The notes under the pieces were generated by a model that saw nothing but the letters and a program-made list of their open reading frames with translations, made no database searches and had not been told where the DNA came from. From Tubulanus polymorphus (taxonomy: Eukaryota; Animalia; Nemertea), in NCBI RefSeq assembly GCF_964204645.1, contig NC_134033.1, forward strand, positions 266,031 through 330,030: a stretch of 64,000 nucleotides of DNA. Reading direction: 5' to 3'. Positions 36,979 through 57,016 of this stretch are shown piece after piece. The stretch's first letter is position 1. Every line of letters begins with the position of its first letter. Position numbers and translations under genes: made by a program.

Positions 36979-39900
36979 ATGAAGATGAAGAACTGGACCT
37001 GTTTGTTAATTCTACTGCTGACAATCAAGTTTTATTCAGAAGCTGCATCGGTACGAAATAAGAGAAATACCGGTGAGTTTAAATGATGTGTCTATACTGG
37101 TATCAACCATCACTAGGCGGTTACCAGAATTCAATTTCAATTTTGAAAAAACTGCTCAAGGCATCTGGACAGTGTGAATGTATTACCGGGTACAAGAATA
37201 TTACGTATATTGTGTATTTGATATTTCAGCACCTGATGGAGTTGTACTGGACAGTGTGAATGTATTACCGGGTACAAGAATATTACGTATATTGTGTATT
37301 TGATATTTCAGCACCTGATGGAGTTGTACTGGACAGTGTGAATGTATTACCGGGTACAAGAATATTACGTATATTGTGTATTTGATATTTCAGCACCTGA
37401 TGGAGCTGTACTGGACAGTGTGAATGTATTACCGGGTACAAGAATATTACGTATATTGTGTATTTGATATTTCAGCACCTGATGGAGTTGTACTGGACAG
37501 TGTGAATGTATTACCGGTTACAAGAATATTACGTATATTGTGTATTTGATATTTCAGCACGTGATGTAGTTGTACTGGACAGTGTGAATGTATTACCGGG
37601 TACAAGAATATTACGTATATTGTGTATTTGATATTTCAGCACCTGATGGAGTTGTACTGGTCAGTGTGAATGTATTACCGGGTACAAGAATATTACGTAT
37701 ATCGTGTATTTGATATTTCAGCACCTGATGGAGTTGTACTGGTCAGTGTGAATGTATTACCGGGTACAAGAATATTACGTATATTGTGTATTTGATATTT
37801 CAGCACCTGATGGAGTTGTACTGGTCAGTGTGAATGTATTACCGGGTACAAGAATATTACGTATATTGTGTATTTGATATTTCAGCACCTGATGGAGTTG
37901 TACTGGTCAGTGTGAATGTATTACCGGGTACAAGAATATTACGTATATTGTGTATTTGATATTTCAGCACCTGATGGAGTTGTACTGGACAGTGTGAATG
38001 TATTACCGGGTACACGTGTATTACTGTCGCAGGAAGGCAAAAATGTTAGTATTACCTGTAAACAGAGCAGCTCTACAGCGACTGGTGTAGAATTCCAGCT
38101 ACAAGTGAACAGTGGAGCAGGAGGGGCCTGGACTCCAATACCGCTCGGTGTATCGAAGTTGTGGAAAATTTTACCTGAGGCTGGTAAAATGTATAAATGT
38201 GTGGCCACTAATTCAGCCGGAAGGAAAGAAAGTAAAATCTACCAATCAGATGTAATCAGTGAGTATAGCGGGAACCTCGTAAATCAGTTTGTCATTAGAT
38301 AATCATTTTTTTCTTCAAAATTCGACTGAACCTAATTTAAATATTGCGGAAAGAAAATATGATGAAATAGATTACTGTCTTAGCTGAATTTCCGTCATAT
38401 ATACTTGCAAAAACCTGTGGAAACAACAGCAAGGCCTGGTTCCACAGTTGTGAGGTAAAGAGTTAACTCCGAGTTAAAGTTAGTTCATTTTCAGTGTTTT
38501 AATTAAGACTCTTTTAACTTAAGTCAAATTCCACAATTTCCACAATTTCGACTTAAGTCAGTTTCCACAACTGTGGAACTGGATCATGAGTTTTAAACCA
38601 GAAGTCAAATTTTACAATTTCTTTTATACATGTATGAATATTATCAAAAATTCATAAAGAGGATTTATCTTAGATATGATGCGTTATGTGATATCTCTAG
38701 AACCCAGTGATACCATGTGGGATCTCGGTAGAATTAGATTTAGCCTGTGCCCTCTACTGGGGCGGTAAACTGGTTACAGATCCTATAGTTACCGTAGAGA
38801 ACAATGCTAATAAATGAGAAAAAAATACGTTCCTCAGCTACGAGTATTTATTACACTCCAACCATTTCCACGGTATATGGAGGAAAAAATAGTATTCAGA
38901 ATTATTTACAAAACAGAAAATAAAATCAACTTGAACCGAAACAAACTTTATTCTTAACGTTGTATTTACGATTTATACTATTGGAGGGATTTCACATCTA
39001 GACCTAATTTGATAAATTTATTCAGATTTAAAGTTGAATTTTTTAATCCAAGGTTCCTAAAAGGGTTTAAATTTAAGTAAATTTTACGAGATTCGGTGAG
39101 TTACTAATATGAAATACGCCACGCAATCGATAGAAACTGGAACTATGATTGTGCTGGGGTTGCAATGTTAACTATTTGTAAATACACTTGTTACGGACCC
39201 AAAAATCTGAGGTCAAAATATAAACACAATCGACCTGATTACAGAGGAATTCAAACATTTCCCGTCCACCACCAATTATAGTATGATTTTCTTTATAGGT
39301 ATAAACATAAATGAAAACCCGTGTAAGATGGCTCAATTCCAATCGCTGACTTGTACTTGTAAAGCCATTAGTAAAATCGGTAATCCAAACATAACAGTTA
39401 AATGGTTTGCTGATGGATTTTCTGAAGGTGAAACTGATTTTTATGAGATTACTAAAAAACATGACGTAAATACTCCGCTAAAAGATGGAGTTATCAACAG
39501 GATTCAGAAAGATTTTCGTCTCTTGATGCACGCGACATTGACTCAATGTCGTTTGTGGGAGTATAATGGGATAAAACTACTGGAACCACCTCACAATCAA
39601 ATACAACATCAAACTCCAATGGATGTTACGTGTAAGTTGAATAAACATTGTTTTGTATTTGTTGCCCTGAGCATAGGACATTCTATTGTTAATACCACAG
39701 TTAGAGATTTAGGAGTTACTTGGATAACACTTTTACAACGACGGCTGATCGTCTCTGAGTTTCTTTCGTTTCGATATTTGGTCGCAATGAATAAATTTGC
39801 TTGTATTTATTTGCTTTGTGAAAATTTTCGAAAATCAATGAACAAATGTTTTTCGAAAATCAATGAACAAATGTTGTTGACGTGATAAGGTTCTAGACTG

Positions 39901-42900
39901 ATCAGTAAAATTGTGAAAAGAAATTAAATAATATATACATATAATCAATGATAAATCAAATCAATAATGATTAAATATGTAACAAATTCTATCCATTAAA
40001 TACATTTACATCTTTTTCTTTCAGATTTTCCTGTTGAAATTCTGACGAACGATAATTATACGGGAAAACCTGACATTAGAACACCAGGAGAAATTGTAGA
40101 ATATACTTGTAGAACAGTTGAAGGGAGGCCCGATCCTACAGTGATATACCAGCAGAAGAGAAAAGGTTCTGAACAATGGCAGCCAATTCCTGATCCACAA
40201 CCTCTTAAAGTACCTCACAAAGGGGGTTTTAACACGACCTACAAGTTTAAAGCTGATTTCAAACTGCACAATGGAACCTCATTTCGATGCGCTGTAAAGG
40301 AGAACCTTACGTTTCCAGAACCTCAGCAATTCAATCCAATCATCGTTTATTGTAAGTAACAGATTTATTTTTCTGAAATATCTTCCATAGAAATTGGCTT
40401 TGGGTTTGAGCGATGGTACAAACCTCTTGTCGTAGTAGATCTATGATCTACCCTGAACATGTCACGATGACATCAGGTTCGAATCCCTCCCGATGGATGA
40501 TGGGTCTACTATGTCAGGGTTTCAGAAACCTTAAAAACTTTTAACTTTTGCTTTTATCAGATTTTGCACCAGATTTCAAGAAAGACGGTGAAAATGAAAC
40601 ACACGCGGCGTATATTGTAACAGTTAATAGTAACCTATTGACTCAACAAGTTACATGTGACCCTCCAGCTGTCGTTCAGAAACTATCAAACTCTCAGTGG
40701 AATATAACCATACCTATCCTAAACAGTATGGTAACTGACTATAGAGGGCGCTGTTTGGCTGACGGTATTAATGAAAGGGCCATTTATGTCGCTCGTTATC
40801 ATAACGCCGGTCCAACTGATAAACCAGGTAAGATTCCGGGTCAGAACTGGATAAGTTTTATCTGAATCTGAACAACTGCTCGAAGTCATCTCCTCTTGAC
40901 CTGATGAATTGCTTCAGTCGTCATCGGAAAATTAATTATATTCAACTGAGGTCATCTCTATTTTTTGAGTTTCAAGATATTTGTGATTTAATTGACTAAG
41001 TGTAACCTATGTGTTAAAAAGTCTTATCTGAACTAGAATTCAGATCAGTTATTTTTTTCATTTTATCACGTGTCACATTTGAAATGTACCACATATATTT
41101 GATATATGCAATATTCAAAATGCTGTAACTTCTATTTAGACGCCAGTTAACCCCTGAACACGTGTTTGTTATTTCAATTGCTGATTTATTGAAATTGTAG
41201 TTGTCGATGGATGGAATGGAATAAAAGTGGCTGGTGTTGTAATCGGTATATTGATATTACTGATTCTGATTGTACTGTTTATTCTGTGGCGTCGTGGCTG
41301 CTGTAAGTTTTACATAAAACCATCATTTAATCTGAAGAAAACAATAATTTAACCATGAACGAAGTCAAAACGGAACGTGATATTCCTAAATGAACAGTAG
41401 TAGAATTGATATTGAAACAAGCAGTATTTCTGATTTTAGACACTTGGGACTTTAGTCCCAGCGGGCTATCGCGTTCATTTGTCGCCCGTCCACCCGTCCG
41501 TTCGTAGACAGAATCCAGTAATTTTTGAAGACGCTGTTTTACACATATTTCAAGTTTTCGAGGGAAATTTTGAAGACGCTTTTATTATCTTGATCATATG
41601 TATTTGTATCCCCCCAGGGCCCATCAGCATAAGAAAAAAAGGGTCAAATGGACACAAGATGACCGTCCTGTGACTTTTTTGTGCCCAAAAATGTCATCTG
41701 GTTTGTAATTTTTCATTTAAATTTGTGCTGGCTATTCTGTGGATTGGAATCTTCAATAGCTGGTACAGGTATTTTTCATCAGCCAATTATGACGCAATTG
41801 GCGGCCATCTTGGTGTCATTAGTACTCATTCGTAGGTGGGAAAAAGTTTTTCCACATTATATTGATACCTAAGCGTATTTTGTTCCAACAATCAATTGCA
41901 AAATTGTAACTCATGTCATCGTCTATGATTGTGGTGAGTTTCAAGGTCATAAGTTATTCTATACGGTTACCAGGGGGCGTTGAATATCGAAATTGTTAGG
42001 TTGTTGAGCATTTGAAACCACTTTCCAAGCAAATGGTGTCCCTGAACCCCTAGTTTAATTTACAGTCACGTGTTTGGATCCGAAACCTAAAGATGTGATT
42101 GAATTGTTGCGTTGGACAAGTGAAACCTGGTATGAAAAAGGTAAGATTCTCTCACATGATTTACTGCACATATTCTCAGATATCGGTTTGATAATTTTAG
42201 GTGTTTTTTTTTTCTTTGCAGATCATGAAAATTGGGTGAAAACACGTGACCGACCGCAGCCAGGTATTTATAGAATTATCAACCTTTTGATACTTAAAGA
42301 TATTTTAATTAAACGAAGTTCATTAGTAAATCCATATAAAATGTTACTCGATATTTTCTATACTGTGATTTTGCTGTTTTATTTTACTTCCATCTATAAG
42401 TTTTGATAATCTCTGAGCGAATGATGTATTTTTAATATAATTCTAACTCTTGAGACTGAATGTCTGTGATATTCTCAGATCATCGCTAAACAGTAATCGG
42501 ACACTTCATTCCTAGACTATTCATTTATTTTCTGTCAGATAACGATTATTTTTTGTTGTACTTTTCTTCTCATCAGATCTCATCCACTGATGCAATCAAT
42601 CATGCAATGTTGCTCATAATTCGAAATCATATCAAATAGATAATTATCCATTTAAAAACATAACAGAATTATAAGATCAGTTAATTATCACATATAAATT
42701 CGGCGGCCATCTTAGAGTCATCAGTCCTCGCTCATAAGTGAAAGAGTTTTTTTGAGGAAAATATCAACAGGTTTTTAATTTATAGTCTTGATATAAGATT
42801 ATTATTAGCACTTTAAGAGGATACGTCTCCTCACGTGAAATTGAGTTATCCGGTTGTCTATTCTAGCCACCAGGGGGAGTTGATTATTGAATCATATACG

Positions 42901-45900
42901 AATTATTTATTGGGATATTTTATCACAATCAATCGCAAACTTATAATTGTTGTGATTTTAATTTTTTGCTCGAGAAAATATAACTTAAAATTGTTCATTC
43001 ATCAAAAACTTGATTGTTTGTGACGCCAATGTCTTCATTTGAAAGCCAATTAATTATAAACAACTTTTTTATAGAAACTGTTAGAATAATAAAAGATGTT
43101 TACGGAACCGAGAATGATTGGGAGTTAACGAGAGATAAGGATAAACAAGGTAAGAGTAGTGACTGGTAAGAGAAGTGAGTGGTAAGAGTAGTGAGGGGTA
43201 AGAGTAGTGACTGGTAAGAGTAGTAAATGGTAAGAGAAGTGAGTGGTAAGAGTAGTGAGGGGTAAGAGTAGTGACTGGTAAGAGTAGTAAATGGTAAGAG
43301 AAGTGAGTGGTAAGAGTAGTGAGAGGTAAGAGGAGTGAGTGGTAAGAGTAGTGAGTGGTAAGATGAGTGAGAGGTAAGAGGAGTGAGAGGTAAGAGTAGT
43401 GAGTGGTAAGAGGAGTGAGTGGTAAGAGTAGTGAGGGGTAAGAGTAGTAAGAGGTTTAGAGTAGTGAGTGGTAAGAGGAGTGAGTGGTAAGAGGAGTGAG
43501 AGGTAAGAGGAGTGAGTGGTAAGAGGAGTGAGTGGTAAGAGGAGTGAGAGGTAAGAGGAGTGAGTGGTAAGAGGAGTGAGTGGTAAGAGGAGTGAGTGGT
43601 AAGAGGAGTGAGAGGTAAGAGGAGTGAGAGGTAAGAGGAGTGAGTGGTATGAGTAGTGAGGGGTAAGAGTAGTGACTGGTAAGAGTAGTAAATGGTAAGA
43701 GAAGTGAGTGGTAAGAGTAGTGAGTGGTAAGAGGAGTGATATAAACAATTCACAATTGAACAAATACTTTTTATATTTCATTTCAGAAAAAGGTATCAAA
43801 GAATCCGCGTTCCAACAGTTATCACGTGATCAAAGTAAGCTATAGTTTGTGTTAGTTTAAGTTCATGTACATGATTACATGCACATGTCACATAAGTGTA
43901 CATGCACATGTTTGTATTGTTTAAATGTACATATATCAGTTATGTGTGAATTCATACATGTCAGTAACATGTGAATGTGAGTTCAATTAACACGAGTTTA
44001 ATCAATATATTTTCAGACATGTTAGATTTGGTCAAAGAAATTCTAAGTAAGTTCAAGATATGACTCGGTATTTCCTCTTCAACTCGAATCTTGGATTCAA
44101 ATGTGTTTATAATTATCTATTGACAGGAAAATACTTTAGAATAAACAATTTAGAAACGAAACTATCAAATGATATCGGTAAGATTTGATTGAATACAGTT
44201 ATTGATGTATGAGTTTATTGATTATTATTCTACTGTCAACTCATTTTGTAAATGTATTACAGATACATTACTGAACAAGAAGAGGTCAATAGATGGCGCT
44301 GATGCAGTTTACAATAGAGATGAAGGTAAGTTATTATCATACACTGTTCATAGACGAAATCAATTATTCTGCTTTACTGATTAAAATGAAGCAAATCTCA
44401 TTCAAGATGGCCGCTGGGCCGCCTTTTGGCAATGTTAAAGAGGCCTATACCGATTCTGGAAAACCTTTCTGGGGGTTTCGTTTCAACCAAAATACTTCGT
44501 ATACATTCCGGAATAGTGTAATCCGTAAACCGGATTGAAGTGACCGGTTAAGAATTTGTAATCTGGAATTGATATTCCTAAACCTGAATATTTACAATCA
44601 AAACCTGTTTTGTTGCAATTTCTGGTCTAAATTCCGCATTTCATACATCGAATTTGAGATGTTTTACTCACGCGTGCCAGAATATCACTAATTCAACAGT
44701 TGTTAATAATCCATCCTTGGATTAAACAGAACTAATATAGGTACATTCAAACTCTTATTATTGTTATATGCTGATGATACGGTTATACTCGCCGAGACGC
44801 CAGAAGGACTTCAATGTGCCCTTGATAATATTTCTAATTACTGTCATGTAATGCATATCGGAATTAATTATGAAAAAACGAAAATTGTCGTCTTTAGAAA
44901 AGCTGTCAATGTAAGAAACTTTGTTTGGAAGATTGATGGACAAGTAATAGAAAGTGTAAACTGTTTTACATACTTAGGTATGGATTTCAATTTCAATGGA
45001 AAACATAATGTAACTATCAACAGTCTGGCTTCTCGGGGAGTATCAGCATAATATAATTTCAGAAAATACCTTCTGCAGTATCCAAAAGTCACACCCAGGC
45101 TAGCCATTAAATTTTTTAACAGCCTCGTGGTACCTGTCTTAACTTATGGCTGCCAAAATATGGGGTTTCAAAGAACAAAGAAAACTAGAGAGAATCCCTC
45201 TCAAATTTTATAAATACCTCCTGGGAGTTAAAAACTCAACACCTGATAACTTTGTATTTAGTGAAATTGGTAAATATCCAACACATATTCAGCAAAGAAT
45301 GTTAATTGTGAAATATTGGCTTAATATACATAAAACTAAACCCGAGAAACTAACTAAGCTGATGTACAATCAAATGTTAGATGATATCATACGTGATCAC
45401 CGTGTAATTAATAAGCTTCTTTGGTTAGAGATCTATTGAATGGCCTAGGATATGTGGAATCTATGTGGAAAGGCTTTCAATCGCCTTTGGTATATATTAT
45501 GTATTCAATGTATTTATATACTTGAATTATTTACCCGCCATACATTATCATGTAATTGTGTCATATCATTAAAAAAAATTATATTTTTTTGATATAATAA
45601 ACTAATAAATTAATATAAATCCCACAATGAGAAAGAAAAATTAGTCCGACTTACAACAACAAAATTAAAACAAAGAGCAAAGAGACTAATTGAGATATGA
45701 TATTGATTTCAATTGAACTAATTTCATCTTAATTTCTTTAATTCAGATGAAGCACATGTTAGTTTTATAACGCAATTGAATGAAGAGAAAAGACCCCTGA
45801 CAGACAAAGAGAAACAGTTCATCACAGATGGTCAGTAAAACTATGAATTATAACATAGTCTTACATTTTGAAAAAGGTGCTTCCTTTCTGAAGAGAAGCC

Positions 45901-48900
45901 ATTGCAAATAATAGAAGCCTTTGAAAATAATGTAGTTTCTTGTGAGTTTCAGATCCCCAGTAAACAGTTATAATGATGAATTTATACATTTTCAGTTGGT
46001 TCAGCAGTTGAGACTATTGTTGATTTGTTTGCTAAAATGTCCGGTAGGTTCCATAAATCATTTCAGTAAAAATACTGTGGAGTTTGTTGTGGAATCATTG
46101 AATAATTGATTGTGTTTATTTTTAATGTAGATGCTGAATTATGTGAACGAGGAATATTGAACATAAAACGTAGGTTCTAATTATCATTAATCCGTAACAG
46201 TTCACACCGTTGTTTTCACCGCTACTAAATAAGATAATTTTGAGATCTCCACGGTCGATACTTGGAGTATCCGAAAACCCGACAAAACCAACACTAAACA
46301 AGTCAGATCAAAAATATCTACGTTATAATCATTGCCAAAGATTCACTATTGTAATTATCATATTTAAACTACAAAAAATAACATAAACAATAACATAAAA
46401 ACCCACTATGTACAAATTAAAAGAGTTTTTAAAATCGAGAATTTATTTATTCAAACAATCTAAAATATAAGAACACGATGTTTCAATCTCACACAAGTGT
46501 GACGATGATCTCTAGTGTGAGATCGAAACGTCGTGTATTTCATATTCTAGATTGGTTGAATAAATAAATTCTAATAGATTAAGTTCACTGTACATTTATA
46601 TGTGAATTCTCTGTACATTAACATATGAGTTCGCTGTACATGTACATGTGAGTTCTCTGTAGTATTTGTAATTTATGTGCTAAACACTTTTTCTTTACAT
46701 TTCAGCTACTGTTGAAATTGCTGGTAAGTTATGATATTCACTATGATGTTTAAACTGATGCTGTTCAATTAAAACTGAAATATCCCTGTATCATTTTGTA
46801 GAAAACTATGTGCAAGAAATACTTAAAACAGAAGTCAAACAACAGAATGGTGAGTGTAATCTATCAGGGGGAGGGGGGAGGGGGTACTTACAACTGTAAA
46901 CTGACTACAAATTAAACACATTTTGATCAATTACAGGAAACCTCGTCACACAAATAGAAAACCAGAAAGTAACTGATGAAACAAAGACAGGTTTGTTGCA
47001 AGTTAATCTTATTATCATAATTTATCCATAATCGATTCAAATGTTAATAGTAAATTGTGTGTGATTTTTTGTCAACTGAAAAACTTAATATACAATTTTT
47101 CCCCGCAATGTCATTATGTCTGTTTTACAGAAATGAGAGTGGCTGACAGGAACCGTTCTGTAACAGTCAAATGTGGTAGGAATAAAAATGTTATCATTCG
47201 AAAATTATTTTAAAATGACAAATCGTTTTGTATAAATTGGTTCATCTTCTGAGGTTCAATAAAACCATCGGTGCCACCGATTGATGGGGAATATTTATAC
47301 GATCAAATTCATTCACTTCAATACGAGAAATGAAATATTAAATTCTAGTTTGAACTGATCCGGTCACTATTCATGTTATTCTATTCATATATTCATTTGT
47401 AGAATCAGTTTTATTGGCGTCAAGTTTGCAGAAATTAGAAGAGAACAAACATTCTACAGAACTAGATAAAAGTAAGTGTAAACTTTCTTTGTCCCTTGAG
47501 CTAAATTTAAAGAGTATTTGAGAGGCATCTGTTTTGATTCAGAACCAAGTTTTAAGTATTAAGAATGTAACTAGGTCACAGTTTGTATCGATGTGAATAT
47601 GTTTTGGACCGAGTTCATCTCAGATGATTGAAATCAGTTGTGTTTAAACACAAGAAAGTTACGCAGTATCATCGGTTCAAAATCAATCATAGCACTAGGA
47701 GCCGTCCCTTTCTCTAATGGATGGCTCCAAGAATATCCAAGAAAATCAAGCTGTATCATCGGTTCAATTGTCAGTCATCAAAAATCAATCATAGCGCGAA
47801 GACACCGTGTTTTGATTATCATATGCATATATCCAATAAAGGGTGGCTTCGACATATCCACATCACATCATCATAAGAGGATGGCTCCGTGTGGATTTCT
47901 GTCAAAATATTTTAATAAGGGAAATTATTTTCTGATTTGTTTATTTTGTTGTTCAACTGTTTTTTCAGGTATCTATGAAATAAGCCGAGATGTTTTAGGT
48001 AAGAACTAATTAGTAACAAACTATAAGTATGGTAGTTAAGGGTTAAAAGCAGAAGCTTACAAACCAATAACTAGCAGACTTTTATATCGCTAGTAGATGT
48101 AGCAAGCAATTTGTTGGATCAAATTTGTTTTCAGATATTTGAAAATTAAAAGTGTTGATGCCTCAGTATTGGATACCATGTTAGATTAAACCTAATAGTG
48201 ATTTGTGTTCTCTTTTTTCAGAGATCAAATTGAAAATTGCAGTTTTCAAATCTATCAAAGGTAAAAGAGGTCTTTATATATATTAGGCGAATTCACACGA
48301 CGGGCAAAAATTCCGTTCCAAGTTGGTCTGGTTCGAAATAGGTCCGGTCCAAATTTGGAACGGACTAAATCTGTATGGGGACAGAAACTGGTACCATGAA
48401 CCCATAAATCTATCATTTAGGTATGAACGCACTCAGATTTGGTCCGGTCCAAATTTGGACCGGACCAATGGTGCGGACCGGTTGTTTTCCATGATATTTT
48501 CTCGAATAATTTCTAGAATTGTACGCTGGGCGAGGTGAAAGATTTCAGAAACAACTCAAAGAGAAACTGAAACAAGAGGAAAATGAAGAGAGTAAAAATG
48601 AGGAGGAAATGAACAGAATAATTCACAGTTCAGTTTGTCAGGCGTTTAAATATATCACTGATATGGATGAAAGTAAATATCGATTTTATACATGTACTCA
48701 ACATGCACATGTAGTATTTTTACATGTTTCATATAGCAGGGATATGTTGTAACCATGTCAACCAATAAAAAGGGCATATATTCTTAATTCAGGGCGGAAA
48801 GGCATATCGGCAAAATTTTTGAAATTTTACAATCATTTTGGAGCTTTCTGAGCATCTCTGAGAGGCATTTAGTCAAGAAACATAGGTTATATATTTCGGA

Positions 48901-51900
48901 AAAATATCTATTGTGTATCTCAGGTGGTTACAACGGCAAATTTTGATACAGAGAAAAAAAATTCCGACCATATCGGGCAACACGGTGTAAATCAGCCCCT
49001 GTATGGGGACAAATGCTTAATGTAGTTTGATAAAACATGTTTATAGAGACATGTTCGTAAGTTATTCACATGCATTTCTATGTCACATGTTCTTGTCAAC
49101 GAACGAACGTCGAATGAATGTAACGATGATTTTTCATCACGGATTGATTTATTGCTGAATTCATGTTCAATTACTATTTGTAATTTCAGAGAAATTAAAG
49201 GAACGAGGAATCGTAGCTTATAGAAGTGAGTAACATTCATGTTTGAAGTTCAAAGTGCAAATTATATTCTACAAATAAATACGAGTTTTTTAGACTTAGA
49301 TTTAAATCAAAAGAAGTAAGAATTAGATATAGTTTAAGTTGACTGTACGAATAGACCTGCTTAGATTAACGCAATGTTAGAATTATTGTTGTTTTTTGTT
49401 TTTCAGTAAAAGATGAAACAGCGAGTAAGTACTGATAACAACTTACACGTTCGAGTCACATAAATAGATACGTGATATGTTATGAAGAGAAAAAACCCAC
49501 AATTAATATATATCTAAAATAAACTACTCTTGTTTATTCCTAATTTTTTGGGTGGAATACATCCACCAATCTTCAGAGTTTATTTGAAATATGGTTCAAT
49601 AGAAGGGAGTTGCCAAGTCACACCAGGATATTTAACAGAGAATAGGACAAAATTAGATGAAGGAAATGACGTAAGGGAAAAAACAAGAGTAGTTGTCTTA
49701 GATCTACGTATTGTGGGTTTTCCCTTCGTGACATTCAAGATTAAAAATAATCTCAACTATTTACAAATATATGTCTCAAATAATAGTGGTCCTTATTTAG
49801 TTCTAAATCCATCAACACTGTTCCGAGCAATCAACACTTAACTTTAGGAACTATTACTGTCATCAGGGTTTCGGCAAACAGTCAAGTGTTTGACTCGAAA
49901 TCAAAAGCAGCGACGTTGAACCTAAATAAACAAATCTCTGAAGATGGATAGTCTACAATTTCACTGACAGATTTTCCTCACTGGCCTTCAATATTACTGG
50001 CCTTTTATAAAACAGTAATGAATATTGATTTTCTACTAGTTAATCAACTGAATTCGTAGATGTGAAAGAAGAACATGTTTCCCTTTACCTACAGTTATCT
50101 AAAGTGTGTTTATTCTGTTTCAGTGAAGCAAATCAAACCAATTATTGCAGACAGAATCGAAACAGAATTTAAAGGTGAATAAAATGGACTTTGAGGTGTT
50201 TTGATTGAAAAATTAAAACGGTACTGAGTAAGGGTGAAGGTCAACCGGTACTGAGTAAGGGTGAAGGTCAACTGCATTTTGCTCTCCTAGTTCATGGAAA
50301 TTTATCAAAGTAGAAAATAATTCTACCGATCAAATAAGAAAGTAGCGGAATCACTTAAAAGAAATACCTTTGTACGTTGATTAATTCAATGGCAGATTTC
50401 AATTCAAAAACGAAAAACAAACTGTTATTATACTCGGCACGCCTGATGTGTATTTAGCCGAAATGTTGCTCAAAATATTCATTCTCGTCTTGATCGGGGA
50501 TGTAACAAAAATGAGGATCGATTTACCATCAATTGCATCGTTAAAGATTATATCACAATGTTAATTACTAATGTTAGTCAAATCTCGAATTCTAGATTAT
50601 ATTGTGGCATACAACATCGAGTTTGCATTTTCTAAATTTGTTTTTGCTCTCCTCATCAAATTAACTTTTATACATTATTTACATTTTTTGCAGAAAAATT
50701 AAAGACAGTTTTTGATGAGAAATATAAAAAGGCTCGCAGCAGTTCGTCACTCAAACACTGGACATACGATATATCTGGCGCGAGTAAGTTCACAGTGAAA
50801 TCAGTTTGTGATTTATAATAGAATTCTATTGTATAAAAACTCGTCTATTATTTATCACATATAGTGTCTGTACTCAGTGAATTAGCCGGTAAAACTCTAC
50901 AGACAAACACAGATTATTGGAAACGAGTCAAAGAATGTTTCGGTAAATAATAAATTCCTGTTTTACTTCGGAATTTTGTTCATGTTTTTTTTTAAATGAT
51001 TTAATTCTAAGTATTGAATACTAATTGTTTGTTTTGTTTGAATAGGAGATGAAATTAACAGTGAAACAAATAAAACTGAACTTGAAAAAATAGGTAAATA
51101 TCAATACAATAACAATTCATTATTCAATAATAAACAAAAATGTTGATTCAGAGTTAGTGGAGTTGGAACCAAATATGTAAAATCGCGGTACATTTTTAGC
51201 CCACTTGGAAGACAATTCCCAGCGGGCTATTGCGTTCACTATTCGTCCGTCGTCCGTTCGTTCATCCGTCCGTTCATCCGTCCGTAGACGGAATCCAGTT
51301 ATTTTGGGAAGTTTTGAAGACGCTTCAAGGTAACGTCTTGATATTTGTGTTACACCCTAGACACATCTTCAGCCCAAAAACTGGCCCTGTCAGATTCAAG
51401 ATGGCCGACTGGCAGCCATTGTTGTTTGCCAAAATCAGCACTTTTTACACATTTTCGAAGTTTTCGTGGGAAATTTTGAAGACGCTTTGATCAATTAGCT
51501 TGATCTTTCGGATATATTTGTAGCCCTCAAGGGCCCATCAACATAACAAAAATTGGGTCAATCGGACACAAGATGGCCATCCTATGACTTTTTTTGGCCA
51601 AAAATGCCAATTGTGACCTGAATTCTGAGTCCTGTAGCTACCTAATGGTTTGCCATTTGCAATTTGTGATCGGCATTCTTGGGAAAGGAATCTATAATAC
51701 CCGAGACAGGTATATTTGATCAGCAATTGGCGGCCATCTTGGTGTCATCAGTACTCATTCGTAGGTGGGAAAAGGTTTCAAAATCAATTGCAAAGCTGTA
51801 GCTCAATTAATTGTTAATTTTACTTTATTCAATTTTATTCTCTAAATTGCAAGGATTGAATCCAGTTTAATTTATTCATTTATTTATATATATTTTCAGT

Positions 51901-54900
51901 TGATGAGTGTTTGGATGAATGCATAAAAACAATGGGAAATGATAGTCATGGTGAGTACCTCACATGGGTACCTCACATGAAGGGTACACCTCATGTGTAT
52001 CCTCAAGGGTACATACATCTCATGAGTACCTCTCGTGAGAGGTACTCATGAGTACTTCTCATGAGTACCTCATATGCGTACTTCTTATGAGTACCCATCA
52101 TGGGGATACCTTGTAATATTAATTATTAGTACCTGATATAAGCTTCCTTGAAGTTGATTCAATGTAATGAATGAATTCTATTTTCAGGCGAATCATCAGA
52201 AATGGAAAGTCTCTTGAAAGAGGATTGGGGTAAGTAAATTATACAGTTGTCACTTTCAGATTCAAAATAGGTAAAATAGTTTGAGATAAAATTTATTGAT
52301 GCGATAAAGATGAAATTTAGTTTCATTTTCAGCCGAATTACATGTATGATAAAATGGATTAATTTGGATTACTGGGGACCTTTTTGTGATATAACTCATT
52401 CGCAAATTTAATGCAACAAGGCGCGCCGTTAAAGATTGAAATTTGCGGTAAAATTGTGAAATTTCCTGATATAAAGATCTGCATAGGGGACTCTAGAAAA
52501 CGTGTTTTGGAAGTTTGACTCGCAATTACTTAAAAACTAATAAAGATAATTGAAAACCGTAAAAAGCAAATAAGATTGATCCTGAAAACTCTGAAAATGG
52601 AGATAAATATTTGTAAGAATTACGAACTTTTGAGTGATTCATTTTCCATAGCATGATAAAGAAGGCACCCTACTAAATACTAATCCATCACACAAACTCT
52701 TCACTTATTGAGATTAATTTTTAAATATTACATTATTTCGGAGGATCCATTTTCTGTTCATTACACTATAGAATGTAATAATATTATATCATTATGGGAT
52801 GAGCAATAATTCAAGTTGAATTATCGGGAAGACTATATCAATGTTTATAACTTCACCAGCGCGCATTGTTGCATTAAATATATGAATGAGTTATATCATA
52901 AAAAAGTTAATTATCAGCTGAGTTCATCGATATTTTTACTTTGTTTCTATCTTAATCCAATCCAGAGATATGAACGAATTAAAAAAGATTAAAATGGGGA
53001 AAAAATTGGGACAAGAATTCAACAATAAGGACCCGGTGGGTAGCAAATAATGGCGCCTGGCAACTGTAAAAAGACTTATCGCGTCGCAACCGACTTACAC
53101 CCGGCTTAACATATTGAAAGAACGAATGAATTTATTTCTGAAAGAAGAAATCGAAGGAATTCTGTAAAATAATAATAATTTTCCCGCCTGATGTCATATC
53201 GGGATATCCCTTGACTTTTGCGCACCGATATGGCTGATCGGCCTTTCTAAAAAAAGTGATTCATACTCATTGAGAAGCGCCGCTACTTATTGTATTGTAT
53301 ATCCGAGGCCTAGAAACAATTTCTTGATGAAATCTAAATTAACAAAGTATATTTGGTTTACCTGCGCAAGGACATAAAACCGGCACTTCTTATGCGTGTA
53401 AGCAGCGAAGATTTGTGTTCAGAAAACCAGTTCATCGTGTATCACGTGACTAATACAGTTTTCCAATCCTCACTTCAAAAGTTAAGAACTAAATGAAATT
53501 AATTGTTGTCATCCGATTGACTCAAACTAAAATTCTGAGAAAGATGAGATTAATAAACATTTTGTGCTGTGCTGAAAATCGCAAGTTGATGCGCGGCGTA
53601 GTTTGCAGTATTTACTGCGGAGCTGTGATGATATCGCCCTCGTTTTAGTAACACGTGAAGCTCACCAAAATCAACGAAGCCGTTTATCTTTAGAATAAGT
53701 ATATTTTTAAAAAAAGGTGAAAAATCTGACTTTTTTAAAGGTGACTTTTGGAAATGTTTTCCTCGTGTAGATTGAAAATAAAGGATTTTTCCACTCGTGT
53801 AGATGGGACCTTGAATGTCTCTGATCGAACTTGTTGCTAACCCGACCCCACAGAAAGATTCTTTCTGGTGCATGTTTTGTCACCACAATTGCTAAGTTTT
53901 AGCTCACGGCATGATGTATGATTGTGGTGAGTTTCAGGTTTGTTGGTTTTTGTTTAAGGTCACTAGGGGGCGTTGAATAGCAAAATAACTCAGTGTTCCT
54001 TGGTACCTAGGCATATTTTTTAACTGCAGTCATTTTTGTGAAATTTTAGCTCATGACATTTTCTATGATTCTATGATTTTGAGGCAAAATCATCCACCAT
54101 AGAAATTGTAAAAAATCTCAAACTGATTTTATTTTCACAGATGTTGATCAAGTTCAGACGAGTCTGAAAGAAACGTATCAACAAATGATCGATGATGAAA
54201 ATTACAAAGAGGTTTGGTGGAGCGATGACGTCACCAATTTCAAAGACATCTTCACCAAAGAACACTCGAAAATTCGAGCCAAAAAAGGAAGTGAGAAGCA
54301 GTCATTGATTTTACCCGATGATTTCGAGAAACTTTTCACTAATAAAAAGCGTGCTATGAAACCCGTGTGCCTCGCGGGTGAACCCGGTATAGGTAAAACT
54401 ACTCAGATTGTTAATCAAGTGTTAACCTGGACAACATCAACAACGGAGTTTGTAGCAAAGTTTCCTATGTTATTCTATATACCGTTAAATGAACTGCCCG
54501 ATGATAACGCGTGTATTTATAAGTACATTTACGAACATCTTTTGAATCGAGTAATCGAAAAGGATCTGCTGATTGGTTTTGAGATATTCTTACGGGAAAA
54601 TGCAGAAAAATCGATATTTTTTCTAGACGGCTTCGACGAGTTGAAAAGCGATAAAGCGAAGGAATACATCATACACGTGACCAATAAATTACCGAAAGCG
54701 CATATCGTCATAACAACACGTGAGTCCGGGGGCAGCAAGATCGTCAATGATCCCAAATTCACTGTTGTATCGATATCCGGCTTCAAACGGGAAGAAGTCA
54801 TCGATATTATGAAGAGAAAATTCCCCAAGCGCGATCCATATCAGCTACTCGACAAGCTTGAAGACGCAGCGTCACCTTTATTTAACAGTATCTACTACAA

Positions 54901-57016
54901 CCCGCTGATACTTCTTATGTTTTGTTTTCTGTATATGGACGAGGAAGTAATTACGATACCATCAAAACTCACCGATATCTACATCGATTTGACATGTTTT
55001 CTGATCAATAAACGCGAGGGCTTCAGGTTATCGAAAGATTGTTTTTTCGACGACATCGGAAATTCTGAAGTGCTTAAAGTAATTTGTCAAGTCGCGTATG
55101 AGAGACTCATCGCGCATCAAAACAGCTTCACCGAAAATTATTTCAAACTCGACGAATCGAAGAGGACGGCTTTGACGTGTAAAGAGGTGTCGCCGCGACG
55201 GAAATCAGACCGCTCCGTCCAGCTACGGTTCATACACAAATCTGTGCACGAATTTCTGGCGGCGGTACACTCGGTCGTGCAATTCAACAACAGTGGTAAA
55301 ATACCCTGGAATAAATGCGCGTTTGAACAACTACAGGACGAACTTGTGAAATATGGTGAATTATACCCGAGATTCATGTCAGGGCTGCTGTATCGTTACA
55401 AGTATAACCGCGGCCTCGGTGAACTTTTCAATACTTTAATAAATGAACATTTAAAAGCAGTCACAATAATGGATAGGTTCGAGTCCTTGGTTACGTTTAC
55501 TAGGGAATGGGCAGATATGGCGCTCAACCCCGATTACGAACGCTACATCGAACTCCGATCCGAAAGAACTGTTTTATCTGATCAGTTATCTGATCAGTTG
55601 TCAATCTGCCTGAATGAAGCCGACTGGCCGGACGACGCCATTAGTGAAATAGTTCACTACATACAGAAAATGTTGTTCGTATCTGTATATAGCAGATCGC
55701 GGATAAACATGCTCGCAAAAATACTCGAACACAAACAATGTCAGATCGAGCTAGTTTACATAGAGGATTATAAGGAACTGGAACCCGACGAATGCCGCGT
55801 ATTAGAAACAGCCATAACGAGTAACACTAGTCTTCACGGTATGATAATAGATACAGACGTGTCATCAGTACGCGATCAGAACTTGACTATGTGTAAGAAG
55901 AGCAACAGTATAAACTGGTTTGTGCGGCGAGATAACGACACTGGTGAATGTTACAAGAAACTCGACAACGAATGGATTAAGACAAGTCACGTGATTGAAT
56001 CTAAAGATTACGCGCGGTTGATCAGTGGTGATACTAACACACACAATACAGTGGAGTTTCTGTTTATTAATACTAGAATTAGTGCGGAACGTTTAGGTAA
56101 TATTTTAGTCAATATTAAAAAATCGTATCCGTCCTTAAAACATCTATATCTCAGATTGCAGGAAGATCAGCTCGATAAAAATACAATCACAGGGCTGAAA
56201 AACATCATTCCGGGTTTGCAAAGCTTATATCTTGAAGTAATAATATGTTGTAAGATTTTGGTGATCGGTTCGGAGGAATGGAAAGATTTTAACAAAGCAT
56301 TAACAGATTCAGACATCGAAACATTTCAGTTCAAACTGCGTAAACGGCGCGGACTGAGCGGACCGTTCGGACTGAGCGAACTGCGCGAACATCGCGAACT
56401 GCTCGAACTGCGCGAACTGCTCGAACTGAACATACTGCGTGAACGACCCCAACTGCCCGAACTGCGCGAACTGGACGAACTGACGGCAGATCAACGTGCA
56501 GCAATCAGTGATAGCTTCGGTTCAATGCAGAAACTAAAACATCTTGTCATTTACGGAATTAATTCACAAATAAACGGCGTTCTAGTTCACCTGCCGCGGC
56601 TGACTGTGTTAGAAATAGTGTTGCATTCAGAAGCTGATGATGACGCACTTGCTCGGTATCTATCATCAGATGCGGTAAATCAGCTGATACAAGTCAGTAT
56701 TGATAGCCTTCTCGATAAACCGGAACAGAACAATCGCATCTTAAAACAACTAAATCACGTCTCATCAATTCGTTATTTGAAGTTTCGCGGTTTACTCCTA
56801 GCGCCGATTAATACACAGCACGAAATCGATTTATTCGTCAAATCAATCGTCGAATTAATCAATAATCTTCCGCATCTTTTTGACCTATATATCGGCTGCT
56901 GCAGCACCGACCCCGATACGACGAGAGATTACATCATATCAGAACTTAAAAAACTCAATAAAAGAGTGAGAGTAAAAATACGGGTCGGAGCATCTGAAGT
57001 TTCATCAGATTCATGA
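36979..57016 (+). CDS. Putative transmembrane Ig-NLR receptor, ~1855 aa, 31 coding exons: signal peptide (36979-37072), four Ig-like exons (37968-38258, 39299-39631, 40025-40351, 40561-40827), TM (41201-41302), 24 mini/microexons (42222-52229), NACHT-LRR exon (54141-57016)
   Basis: All 30 introns are GT..AG and phase 1, every internal exon length is a multiple of 3, and there is no stop between MKMKNWTCLLILLLTIKFYSEA and TGA 57016. TM is VAGVVIGILILLILIVLFILWRRGC. Confidence 0.75.
37165..38014. repeat. 82-bp minisatellite x10 spanning the acceptor of the first Ig exon
   Basis: ATTTCAG|CACCTGATGG at 37229, 37311 ... 37967. Confidence 0.95.
38432..38585. mobile_element. MITE, same family as 28320 and 33751
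   Basis: GGCCTGGTTCCACAGTTGTG...CACAACTGTGGAACTGGATC. Confidence 0.6.
41436..42060 (+). mobile_element. Non-autonomous Helentron/HINE-like element (intronic)
   Basis: 5' CCCAGCGGGCTA, TCCG-type microsatellite, CAAGATGGCC-type cores; homologous to 51195-51800 and 53910-53985. Confidence 0.55.
43145..43740. repeat. Purine-rich ~16-bp minisatellite (GAGTGGTAAGAGKAGT)
   Basis: Direct reading. Confidence 0.95.
44715..45470 (+). mobile_element. 5'-truncated, decayed non-LTR retrotransposon (RT C-terminal part) in an intron
   Basis: LLYADDTVILAE...LQCALD...INYEKTKIVVF...FTYLGMDF, then a stop and frameshift, then IWGF...KFYKYLLGV..STP...VFSEIG. Confidence 0.88.
46438..46573. mobile_element. Inverted-repeat Penelope-type terminus with a degenerate hammerhead core
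   Basis: ~57-bp imperfect arms; the + strand centre is gTGACGA T GATCTC tagtgt GAGATC GAAACGTC. Confidence 0.55.
48284..48482. mobile_element. Palindromic MITE fragment
   Basis: GGCGAATTCACACG start and internal TTGGTCCGGTCCAAATTTGGACCGGACCAA palindrome. Confidence 0.5.
51195..51805 (+). mobile_element. Non-autonomous Helentron/HINE-like element (intronic)
   Basis: Colinear homology with 41436-41910; CGTC/TCCG microsatellite. Confidence 0.6.
52380..52906. mobile_element. Non-autonomous DNA element with ~47-bp terminal inverted repeats
   Basis: CTTTTTGTGATATAACTCATTC..TTAATGCAACAAGGCGCGC versus GCGCGCATTGTTGCATTAA..GAATGAGTTATATCATAAAAAAG. Confidence 0.7.
54141..57016 (+). CDS. NACHT plus helical/winged-helix plus LRR-like terminal exon (NLR-type STAND ATPase)
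   Basis: Walker A GEPGIGKT, Walker B IFFLDGFDEL, sensor-1 IVITTR, NPLIL, FIHKSVHEFLAA, then LxxLxL repeats (LKHLYLR, LQSLYLE, LKHLVIY, LTVLEI, IRYLKF, LFDLYI). Acceptor TTTTCACAG at 54140 is in frame with the ORF. Confidence 0.93.

Follow-up and report, generated by a model that had tools for sequence, protein, structure and literature searches.

Gene Organization at the Locus

The stretch of Tubulanus polymorphus (nemertean, ribbon worm) DNA analyzed here (64,000 nucleotides; hereafter, the window) carries on its forward strand, at positions 36979–57016, an intact gene model of 33 exons. The coding sequence is 5712 nt in length, encodes 1903 amino acids and contains no internal stops or frameshifts across the 33 exons. 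All 32 introns are of the GT–AG type and in phase 1, with polypyrimidine tracts. The parts are arranged in the order signal peptide, four Ig-like domain exons, one transmembrane (TM) exon, linker, and NACHT–LRR exon. A search for further Ig–TM–NACHT architectures, proposed in an earlier sequence-only reading of this DNA, found four NCBI-annotated Tubulanus paralogs, P0007 (LOC141906709), P0012 (LOC141906642), P0030 (LOC141906641), and P0031 (LOC141906708), all named "uncharacterized protein" by NCBI. The features are listed below with paralog matches and with joints from contigs of X1, one public run whose contigs cover exons 24–33 of the gene model.

36979..37072 (+), exon 1: ATG and predicted signal peptide; homologous to P0007 and P0012 N-termini; phase-1 gtgagt donor
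37165..38014 (+), 82-bp × 10.4 tandem repeat in intron 1 (98% matches)
37968..38258 (+), exon 2: Ig-like domain 1; identity to P0007/P0012 78–82%
39299..39631 (+), exon 3: Ig-like domain 2; identity to paralogs 63–65%; Cys residues conserved
40025..40351 (+), exon 4: Ig-like domain 3; identity to paralogs 78%; multi-Ig Foldseek matches
40561..40827 (+), exon 5: Ig-like domain 4, membrane-proximal; identity to paralogs 80–83%; Cys pair conserved
41201..41302 (+), exon 6: single TM helix, then RRGC; identity to P0031 TM 71%
42066..42140 (+), exon 7 (linker): matches LLRWTSETWYEK block of P0031, P0032, and P0039; phase-1 AG/GT
42222..42263 (+), exon 8 (linker): paralog homology, splice sites
43075..43149 (+), exon 9 (linker): identity to P0031 84%
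43793..43834 (+), exon 10 (linker): alternative acceptor 6 nt upstream, 43787
44017..44046 (+), exon 11 (linker)
44127..44177 (+), exon 12 (linker)
44263..44325 (+), exon 13 (linker)
45747..45830 (+), exon 14 (linker)
45996..46043 (+), exon 15 (linker): includes the Met at which the annotation of P0009, a paralog without Ig domains, begins
46131..46169 (+), exon 16 (linker): identity to P0009 residues 3–15 92%
46706..46723 (+), exon 17 (linker): 18-nt micro-exon, located by homology to the PTVEIAE gap
46802..46849 (+), exon 18 (linker)
46937..46990 (+), exon 19 (linker)
47131..47175 (+), exon 20 (linker): donor uncertain (47154, 47172, or 47175)
47403..47471 (+), exon 21 (linker)
47969..47998 (+), exon 22 (linker)
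48222..48260 (+), exon 23 (linker)
48517..48672 (+), exon 24: largest linker exon; identity to P0031 80%; X1 joint to exon 25
49190..49225 (+), exon 25 (linker): X1 joint 48672>49190
49407..49424 (+), exon 26: 18-nt micro-exon (KDETA); X1 contigs begin/end at 49407 and 49424
50124..50174 (+), exon 27 (linker): X1 joint 50174>50694
50694..50783 (+), exon 28 (linker): X1 joint into this exon
50865..50942 (+), exon 29 (linker)
51046..51093 (+), exon 30 (linker): X1 joint 51093>51900
51900..51950 (+), exon 31 (linker): X1 joints 51093>51900 and 51950>52188
52188..52229 (+), exon 32: last linker mini-exon, ends in KEDW; identity to P0007 residues 504–517 79%; X1 joint 51950>52188
54141..57016 (+), exon 33 (2876 nt): NACHT NTPase, helical/winged-helix domains, LRR-like repeats, stop codon
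~55640–57013 (+), LRR-like region

Exons for the signal peptide (36979), the TM helix (41201–41302) and the four Cys-pair domains lie where the sequence-only reading had placed them. Its unbroken chain of phase-1 GT/AG introns without a stop also holds, but its count of 30 introns and ~1855 aa is corrected here to 32 and 1903; the difference corresponds to a few micro-exons (46706–46723, 47131–47175, 47969–47998, 49407–49424, and 50124–50174). A reduced 28-exon model is likewise open throughout (1849 aa, without a stop). Each upstream block homologous to paralog proteins is flanked by a phase-1 AG and a phase-1 GT. The exon chain aligns with P0031 residues 556–2390 at 1247 identical positions out of 1791 (70%), with 115 gap positions and, because it aligns end to end with this NCBI protein, is not due to chance. 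Continuity of the Ig/TM exons with the linker at this locus is predicted from homology and from the NCBI models of paralogs.

Several introns contain repeated or mobile sequences. The 82-bp repeat of intron 1 is a copy of the acceptor together with the initial ~42 nt of the Ig1 exon; the exon 9 donor is followed by a tandem array (43149–43739; 16 bp × 37) of donor-like GGTAAGAGTAGTGAGT units; and the 1421-nt intron after exon 13 contains a reverse-transcriptase fragment (~44710–45436).

Predicted Domains of the Encoded Protein

The exon 1 peptide reads as a signal peptide, with a charged MKMKN start, a hydrophobic core and an SEA|A small-residue site followed by a conserved RNKR. Domain folds were modeled on paralogs 63–80% identical to the window and not on the window protein itself. 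In the AF2 model of a paralog, Ig-like domain 1 (pLDDT 71–88) aligns to antibody/TCR V domains, CD22, and PECAM-1 (Z 8–8.9, rmsd 2.4–3.1 Å, 85–90 residues), and its Pfam matches to Ig_2 and I-set are below threshold. Ig-like domains 2–4 are modeled with low confidence, domain 2 being beta-rich, and the C2-set_2 match in P0031, which corresponds to Ig-like domain 3, scores 20.6 bits against a cut-off of 21. All top 50 Foldseek matches of the paralog ectodomain are multi-Ig ectodomains, of which DSCAM is the best (7e-7). Among paralogs, domain 2 is the most variable (pairwise identity mean 0.79, minimum 0.62) and domain 4 the most conserved (0.92); mean identity is 0.79–0.80 for membrane-distal versus 0.89–0.92 for membrane-proximal Ig domains.

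Only one hydropathy peak >1.8 (19-residue window) is present in the protein, at aa 441–475, and the RRGC that follows the TM helix fits the positive-inside pattern. The join 41302>42066 recreates the paralog sequence WRRGCFTCL over the junction. N-glycosylation sequons, as read from the sequence, number 2.0 per 100 aa outside versus 0.49 inside. The linker is composed of 26 mini- and micro-exons of 18–156 nt encoding 474 aa, predicted to be helical and acidic/basic, with 72% identity to P0031 when taken alone; exon 24 contributes to a predicted helix of ~75 residues (AF2 model).

The 943-aa NACHT reading frame reported earlier, with its in-frame phase-1 acceptor, was recovered: the frame spans 54083–57013 (977 aa between stops; 943 aa when counted from ATG 54185), and cacag|AT directly precedes 54141. 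The Pfam NACHT match (~54362–54826) reaches 58.1 bits (cut-off 26.7; 1.2e-15), and both Walker A (GEPGIGKT, 54377–54400) and Walker B (IFFLDGFDE, 54614–54640) are intact, as claimed. The AF2 model of the NACHT–LRR part of P0031, which is 63% identical to the window exon (pLDDT 73), matches NLRC4 (Z 29.3), the NLRP3 NACHT (Z 27, rmsd 3.6 Å, 417 residues) and NOD2 (Z 27), and its LRR part matches ribonuclease inhibitor (Z 16.7). Pfam searches found no death-fold, TIR, or CARD, in line with the earlier failure to recognize a death-fold. A 9-bp coding minisatellite (56334–56482) lies inside the LRR-like region.

Spliced Contigs, Paralogs, and Related Proteins

Contigs of X1 skip GT..AG introns at 48672>49190, 50174>50694 (depth 520), 51093>51900, and 51950>52188, the last two having the same depth (464) with no other letters reported; judging from these joints X1, which is not on record as RNA, appears to be cDNA. 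Loose contig ends fit 49225>49407, 50783>50865, 50942>51046, and 52229>54141: the loose end before 49407 is the end of exon 25, that behind 50783 is the exon 29 start and that behind 50943 is the exon 30 start. The junction 52229>54141, set beforehand as a test, is seen in one contig, in which the last 11–12 letters of exon 32 stand directly ahead of the NACHT exon. In exons 30–33 the spliced contigs agree with the window letter for letter, and contigs at 54197–54450 are identical to it. Exon 24 contigs are common to paralogs, and part of the placed contigs are paralog-derived (a variant micro-exon 26 in X1; letters at 48593 and 48609 common to all runs).

Exon-by-exon homology, the four NCBI paralogs, the fold models and the spliced contigs that connect the 3′ half of the linker to NACHT support the architecture proposed in the sequence-only reading, and confirm the observation of a gene with signal-peptide, Ig-like, TM, linker, and NACHT–LRR parts. 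All four of these paralogs share this architecture and family; P0031 has a long linker like that of the window gene, whereas the linkers of P0007 and P0012 are short; P0030 and P0031 have additional Ig1–Ig2 exon copies. The genome has four NACHT exons besides the one at this locus with Ig exons in the same orientation 8–18 kb upstream. The NACHT–LRR exon type is also found behind short cytosolic N-termini, and in the tree the window NACHT–LRR is sister to these paralogs (support 94/99) rather than to the remaining Ig-linked ones. The ectodomain–TM cassette is also fused to helical tails without NACHT (at least 12 paralogs; P0032–P0043 stop after the helical region), and the upstream neighbor gene encodes a more distantly related Ig domain with a tyrosine-motif tail. 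The family is modular, its ectodomain being combined with different cytoplasmic tails, and no member turned up outside Tubulanus among the proteins searched.

In the encoded protein, an anchor in the membrane and a long helical stalk would connect an antibody-like surface receptor with a NOD-like immune switch inside the cell, a rare design that has, as the sequence-only reading stated, a precedent in a sea cucumber protein (PMC8699970). AjNLRC4 of Apostichopus japonicus, the closest published analog, is a membrane protein whose Ig part is extracellular and whose NACHT part is intracellular; it binds bacteria and drives phagocytosis, and its cell-membrane location was demonstrated experimentally (PMC8699970; also discussed in PMC13133943). 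Its spacing resembles that of P0007, a paralog with a short linker (TM near residue 450–480, NACHT near residue 600). AjNLRC4, which belongs to a different phylum and is compared here by its published description, differs in having two Ig domains instead of four, no LRR, no long helical linker, and a second TM predicted by its authors. The two architectures likely have independent origins, because no Ig ectodomain with TM and NACHT was found outside Tubulanus among the best 150 matches of an exhaustive HMMER search. Anthozoan NLRs with 3–5 N-terminal TM domains, described from sequence only, are likewise NACHT proteins predicted to be membrane-bound (PMC5094078), but lack the combination of a signal peptide and an Ig ectodomain. 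Vertebrate NLRC4, NLRP3, and NOD2 share the NACHT/helical-domain/winged-helix/LRR fold (paralog model Z 27–29) and Walker A and B, but are cytosolic, have a CARD or PYD effector N-terminal to NACHT and are only 14–21% identical in sequence. The IL-1 receptor and Toll-like receptors are likewise type I proteins in which an Ig or LRR ectodomain is linked to an oligomerizing signaling domain in the cytoplasm; that domain is a TIR and not a STAND NTPase, and the likeness is one of logic only.

Possible Modes of Signaling

The locus probably represents one intact, transcribed gene for a type I membrane protein of ~1900 aa, most likely an outside-in receptor. The earlier interpretation is partly supported overall; its proposals of outside-in or inside-out signaling are inferences. 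The four Ig-like domains would face outward or into the lumen behind a cleavable signal peptide, and one TM helix would be followed in the cytoplasm by the linker, NACHT NTPase, helical/winged-helix domains, and ribonuclease-inhibitor-type LRR. As in NLRC4, the C-terminal LRR may keep NACHT in a closed state. When the Ig ectodomains bind a ligand or cluster, the cytoplasmic modules would become locally more concentrated, and ATP-dependent NACHT oligomerization at the membrane would recruit partners, probably via the helical linker since death-fold, TIR, and CARD are absent.

A less probable reading is that the full-length protein detects, through its LRR/NACHT part, a ligand from the cytosol or from phagosomes, the Ig–TM part merely positioning the NLR at a particular membrane or clustering secondarily (inside-out), which would be similar to how NOD2 and NLRP3 are recruited to membranes. 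Retention of a complete ribonuclease-inhibitor-type LRR, for which an ectodomain-driven receptor has no obvious need and which AjNLRC4 lacks, and the cytosolic, short-N-terminus nature of the nearest NACHT–LRR paralogs would fit such a sensor; however, a mere membrane anchor needs no four Ig-like domains with predicted glycosylation, and the greater variability of the distal ones fits diversification in extracellular ligand binding. It is rather unlikely that the locus instead yields two products, an Ig–TM–helical receptor ending before NACHT and a cytosolic helical–NACHT–LRR protein from an internal start, with the full-length form rare or absent. The NACHT-less P0032–P0043 are of the former kind, an internal start in the linker is possible given the P0009 start Met in exon 15, read-through of the exon 32 donor leads to a stop after two codons, and read placement is confined to exons 24–33. 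Yet the entire exon chain is open and frame-symmetric, the complete architecture is annotated in P0031, and X1 contig depth, itself a poor measure, is 8–49 in intron 32 versus ~460–520 in the flanking exon contigs. Neither an alternative terminal exon nor a NACHT-proximal first exon was found, and the 33–58 kb part of the window contains no short-N-terminus exon of the type preceding NACHT in cytosolic paralogs.

It is very improbable that the model is an artifact of annotation or assembly, or a gene in decay whose exons are relics of duplicated modules without a functional protein. The database proteins searched do not include the product of this locus itself, and the introns carry remnants of transposons and tandem copies of splice sites, but the 5712 nt are free of stops and frameshifts over 33 exons, the splice sites are canonical, and exons 30–33 are matched exactly by spliced contigs.

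Gene Structure and Reading Frame

In tblastn comparison with the window, paralog proteins give exon matches that lie in the same order along it, from the signal peptide to the NACHT exon, whose open frame spans 54083-57013 (977 codons).

Features located in the window by tblastn with paralog proteins
From 36985, + strand, signal peptide
37964-38260, + strand, first of four domain exons
39295-39630, + strand, second domain exon
40027-40350, + strand, third domain exon
40566-40826, + strand, fourth domain exon
52187-52228, + strand, last mini-exon
From 54140, + strand, NACHT exon

The paralog P0031 (LOC141906708, 2393 aa) has the same architecture, with a linker of ~470 aa that aligns to the window in order and piece by piece, and each linker piece in the window is bordered by a phase-1 AG and a phase-1 GT. 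Five more small exons, two of which are 18-nt micro-exons, were located in the leftover alignment gaps. The completed model consists of 33 exons and 32 phase-1 GT-AG introns, with a CDS of 5712 nt that encodes 1903 aa and contains no internal stops; the sequence-only reading, which had given 30 introns and ~1855 aa, was essentially right. The model is identical to residues 556-2390 of P0031 at 1247 of 1791 positions, and the linker by itself at 72%. The joined 1903-aa model was used for frame, hydropathy, and pairwise-identity checks, and searches and fold models were run on single window exons and on paralog proteins. The gene structure and domain identities are established, except that the Ig-like identity of domains 2-4 is plausible, and the gene represents an unusually clean case of domain shuffling via frame-symmetric phase-1 exons. 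G+C is about 32-40% across the gene region, and the locus's own protein was not found in word-based searches of NCBI proteins.

The 13 kb between the TM and NACHT exons hold a reverse-transcriptase fragment and tandem repeats, and for this reason the linker was suspected to be spurious, with the 30-intron chain over-read. This was rejected because P0031 and two NACHT-less paralogs, P0032 and P0039, align collinearly to every mini-exon. AF2 predicts helices in the linker (20% acidic and 17% basic residues), one of them ~75 residues long, at low confidence. The linker matched no Pfam family, gave only chance-level matches to PDB sequences (E 0.36 or higher), and had no usable match in the protein atlas.

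Ectodomain, Topology, and NACHT-LRR Module

Pfam scores for Ig domains in P0031 all lie just below the cut-off (Ig_2, 26.5 vs 27; C2-set_2, 20.6 vs 21; I-set, 21.7 vs 23.7), and a profile made from 14 paralog ectodomains and the four window exons (alignment A1) matched only Ig-superfamily chains in the PDB (MuSK, RPTP sigma and delta, IgLON5, DSCAM), with E-values that were all weak. In the AF2 model of residues 30-445 of the Ig+TM+NACHT paralog P0007 (LOC141906709), domain 1 is confidently all-beta (pLDDT 71-88) and domains 2-4 are beta-rich at low confidence (pLDDT 30-65). The top 50 Foldseek matches of the ectodomain model are multi-Ig ectodomains throughout, DSCAM being the best (7e-7). 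Domain 1 aligns with V-type and I-type Ig domains (V domains of antibodies and TCRs; CD22, PECAM-1, RAGE) at Z 8-8.9, with an rmsd of 2.4-3.1 Å over 85-90 residues. A Cys pair is kept in each of domains 2, 3, and 4 in the A1 alignment. Because of these fold-model and Cys-pair results, domain 1 can be called Ig-like on the strength of its modeled fold, and the same designation is plausible for domains 2-4. Domains 1 and 2 are more variable among paralogs (mean identity 0.80 and 0.79) vs domains 3 and 4 (0.89 and 0.92).

By inspection, the N-terminus begins with charged residues, followed by a hydrophobic core and a cleavage site of small residues, as in a typical predicted signal peptide, and hydropathy gives one peak only, at aa 441-475, followed by RRGC. 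Inspection and hydropathy thus indicate a signal peptide, one TM helix, and a cytoplasmic C-terminus, that is, a predicted type I membrane topology. Sequons number 9 per 446 ectodomain residues vs 7 per 1432 cytoplasmic residues, a ~fourfold excess on the N-terminal side. Right behind the predicted cleavage site of the signal peptide, at the end of exon 1 (window 37050-37072), lies a basic RNKR or [RL]KR site that is conserved in the gene and its paralogs and resembles a putative furin-type processing site.

The region 54185-57013 matches PF05729 (NACHT) at 58.1 bits vs a cut-off of 26.7. Walker A (GEPGIGKT, 54377-54400) and Walker B (IFFLDGFDE, 54614-54640) are both intact, in agreement with the sequence-only reading. 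The fold was modeled on P0031:1194-2393, standing in for the window NACHT exon, which is 63% identical to P0031 in alignment A4 (AF2, pLDDT 73, pTM 0.68). The modeled NACHT and helical domains of this paralog match the NBD-HD1-WHD-HD2 fold of solved NLRs, aligning with NLRC4 (4kxf; Z 29.3), NLRP3 (Z 27-28), and NOD2 (Z 27); against the NLRP3 NACHT alone (7alv), the values are Z 27.0 and rmsd 3.6 Å over 417 residues. The LRR signal is weak in sequence (Pfam LRR_14, E 0.0019; ribonuclease inhibitor, E 0.14). In the P0031 model, the C-terminus forms alternating strand-helix repeats (pLDDT 80-96) that align with ribonuclease inhibitor (Z 16.7, rmsd 3.4 Å, 267 residues) and also with FBXL17 and RanGAP (Z 16-17), and a C-terminal LRR is clear from the predicted fold of the paralog. 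An N-terminal effector domain is typical of the NLR family, but not obligatory. The earlier statement that no death-fold is recognizable holds: Pfam found no death-fold (CARD, PYD, DED) or other known effector in the window exons, P0007, P0031, or P0035. The LRR-like region also contains a 9-bp coding minisatellite (window 56334-56482; ~17 copies, 70% matches) encoding ELRELLEL-type repeats; its counterparts in P0001 and P0007, two paralogs, are shorter.

Transcript Evidence, Paralogs, and Rival Readings

The NACHT exon is present in four public runs, none of them recorded as RNA, and their contigs were compared over window 48480-54450 (exons 24-33). One run, X1, alone among the four behaves like cDNA over this interval. 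Its contigs have GT..AG joints at 48672>49190, 50174>50694, 51093>51900, and 51950>52188, and break also at 49225/49407 and 49424, the latter two positions being both ends of an 18-nt micro-exon; checked against the window sequence, the loose ends that follow 50783 and 50943 match the opening letters of the exon that comes next in each case. The X1 contig that begins at 54140 has AAGAGGATTGG in front, which is the exact 3' end of exon 32, and carries the window's GAT codon (Asp) at a position occupied in P0007 by Glu (GAA or GAG). The junction reads for 52229>54141 that the sequence-only reading had asked for were found in the form of one X1 contig, which joins the end of exon 32 to the start of the NACHT exon, and X1 contigs over 54197-54450 are identical to the window. 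X1 contigs are short, contig depth is an unreliable measure, and some contigs are paralog-derived (a variant micro-exon; letters at 48593 and 48609 common to all runs). A partial transcript of the gene is observed. Upstream, over exons 1-23, homology and paralog models argue for a continuous run of the Ig/TM part into the linker at this locus, because at least 12 NCBI paralog models run Ig-TM-linker unbroken and because the splice 41302>42066 restores the paralogs' WRRGCFTCL over the junction.

The window corresponds to contig C9, 266031-330030, and the closest relatives of its NACHT frame are only Tubulanus polymorphus NCBI proteins. In the genome, intact NACHT exons of this type number at least 20 and closely related Ig cassettes ~25, with many Ig3-like exons that are more distant, and co-oriented Ig exons lie 8-18 kb upstream of four further NACHT exons (contig C6, 18.35, 18.44, 22.26, and 22.31 Mb). 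A tandem array at C6 21.68-22.83 Mb (period ~35-40 kb) contains at least 12 genes with Ig x4-TM and helical exons, and no NACHT exon of this type was found within it. The array proteins P0032-P0043 have a single TM and no Walker A, with up to ~four copies of the helical unit per protein. In other NACHT paralogs, the N-termini are short, cytosolic, and made of repeated peptides; P0001, P0003, P0008, and P0013, encoded on other contigs, begin with short repeated peptides that contain VQIG or VQMG and then NN-x-M/V. A RHIM in these N-termini was considered and rejected, the likeness being limited to the RHIM core (Pfam RHIM, E 2.8).

The reading favored here is that clustering of the ectodomain would activate the receptor, and that the LRR may autoinhibit the NACHT module, as suggested by the closed NLRC4 structure being the best structural match. 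A rival reading takes the protein as a cytosolic sensor that is tethered to the membrane. In an ML tree, the window NACHT-LRR is sister to short-N-terminus cytosolic paralogs (support 94/99). Monophyly of the Ig-linked NACHT exons was not recovered in this tree; they form no clade, but its backbone is unresolved. In another rival, the one locus gives separate receptor and NLR products. The idea of an independent N-terminal module, started separately as in the Ig-less paralog P0009, was rejected, since the P0009 N-terminus is an internal stretch of the same linker in P0031; such an internal start remains only as part of this two-product rival. As a possible alternative first exon, the closest paralogs' short N-terminus (NPGINAEN...RPAENL) was sought and not found within window 33-58 kb. 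For ectodomain clustering, the same genome offers natural controls (the same ectodomain with no NACHT, the same NACHT-LRR with no ectodomain, and linkers both long and short), which make STAND oligomerization driven by such clustering directly testable.

A broader and rather doubtful reading is that these genes are phase-1-shuffled modular receptors, transmembrane and inflammasome-like, independent of the echinoderm case, in which the fused forms are a 'Rosetta stone' for cooperation in trans. If so, one variable Ig ectodomain-TM cassette would be joined to either of two cytoplasmic outputs, helical repeats alone or NACHT-LRR behind a helical linker; the neighboring gene would couple a related Ig domain to a tyrosine-motif tail; separate Ig-TM-helical receptors and cytosolic NACHT-LRR paralogs would work together in trans, and surface recognition would directly nucleate an NLR oligomer.

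Known Membrane NLRs, Neighboring Gene, and Intron Contents

NLRs are textbook cytosolic sensors. Membrane-integrated forms are already known, namely, an LRR-less sea cucumber protein and predicted multi-pass anthozoan proteins. The sea cucumber AjNLRC4 is located on the membrane of coelomocytes; it binds bacteria, and the phagocytosis that it drives depends on actin (PMC8699970). The opposite topology has been reported for another sea cucumber protein (PMC13133943), and anthozoan NLRs have 3-5 predicted N-terminal TM helices (PMC5094078). The window model and the published description of AjNLRC4 have in common the order of extracellular Ig, TM, and intracellular NACHT, and by analogy the window gene appears to follow the same logic. 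Compared with AjNLRC4 as described, it differs in its full LRR, long helical linker, four Ig-like domains, and phylum, and it probably arose independently. In an exhaustive HMMER search with P0007:1-1000, Ig+NACHT occurred only in Tubulanus among the best 150 matches, and no Ig+TM+NACHT protein from outside Tubulanus was among them. Among the matches listed, the nearest NACHT proteins outside Tubulanus come from amphioxus (DED, TRADD-N, two NACHT domains, LRR) and from Asterias rubens, a sea star (a NACHT match), each at 27% identity; the nearest Ig match outside Tubulanus is a hemicentin-like protein. A literature search found no paper connecting Tubulanus with NLRs. The window gene sets a complete NACHT-LRR in one frame with an ectodomain of four Ig-like domains, and Nemertea is the third phylum concerned.

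The upstream neighbor (28091-32042, same strand as the gene) is NCBI LOC141910843. Its 509-aa protein, P0074, matches the window at 100% in the N-terminal exons and 96-97% in the last two, with one 23-residue stretch at 78%. P0074 comprises a signal peptide, a single Ig-like domain that shares 44-48% identity with Ig domain 3 of the gene, a TM, and a tail in which PY[IM]DMEAGKGKDT is repeated, with YxxM-type tyrosines. The protein is related but has a cytoplasmic output of quite another kind.

Several introns of the gene contain repeats. In intron 1, a unit of 82 bp occurs 10.4 times (98% identity; window 37165-38014). Every unit reproduces the acceptor (tttcag) together with the opening ~42 nt of the Ig1 exon, which code for PDGVVLDSVNVLPG; the array provides stacked decoy 3' splice sites or, possibly, extra in-frame 42-nt mini-exons. 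A 16-bp unit (GGTAAGAGTAGTGAGT), repeated ~37 times at window 43149-43739, begins exactly at the exon 9 donor and forms stacked donor-like sites; its period is not a multiple of 3, and therefore the use of a downstream copy would shift the frame. Intron 13 (1421 nt) contains retroelement reverse-transcriptase fragments on the + strand with a YADDTV motif (window 44710-45436). Intron 30 contains a very high-copy repeat (window 51080-51880), with a summed contig depth of ~490,000 in the DNA-like runs and with non-GT/AG joints to 53917-53961.
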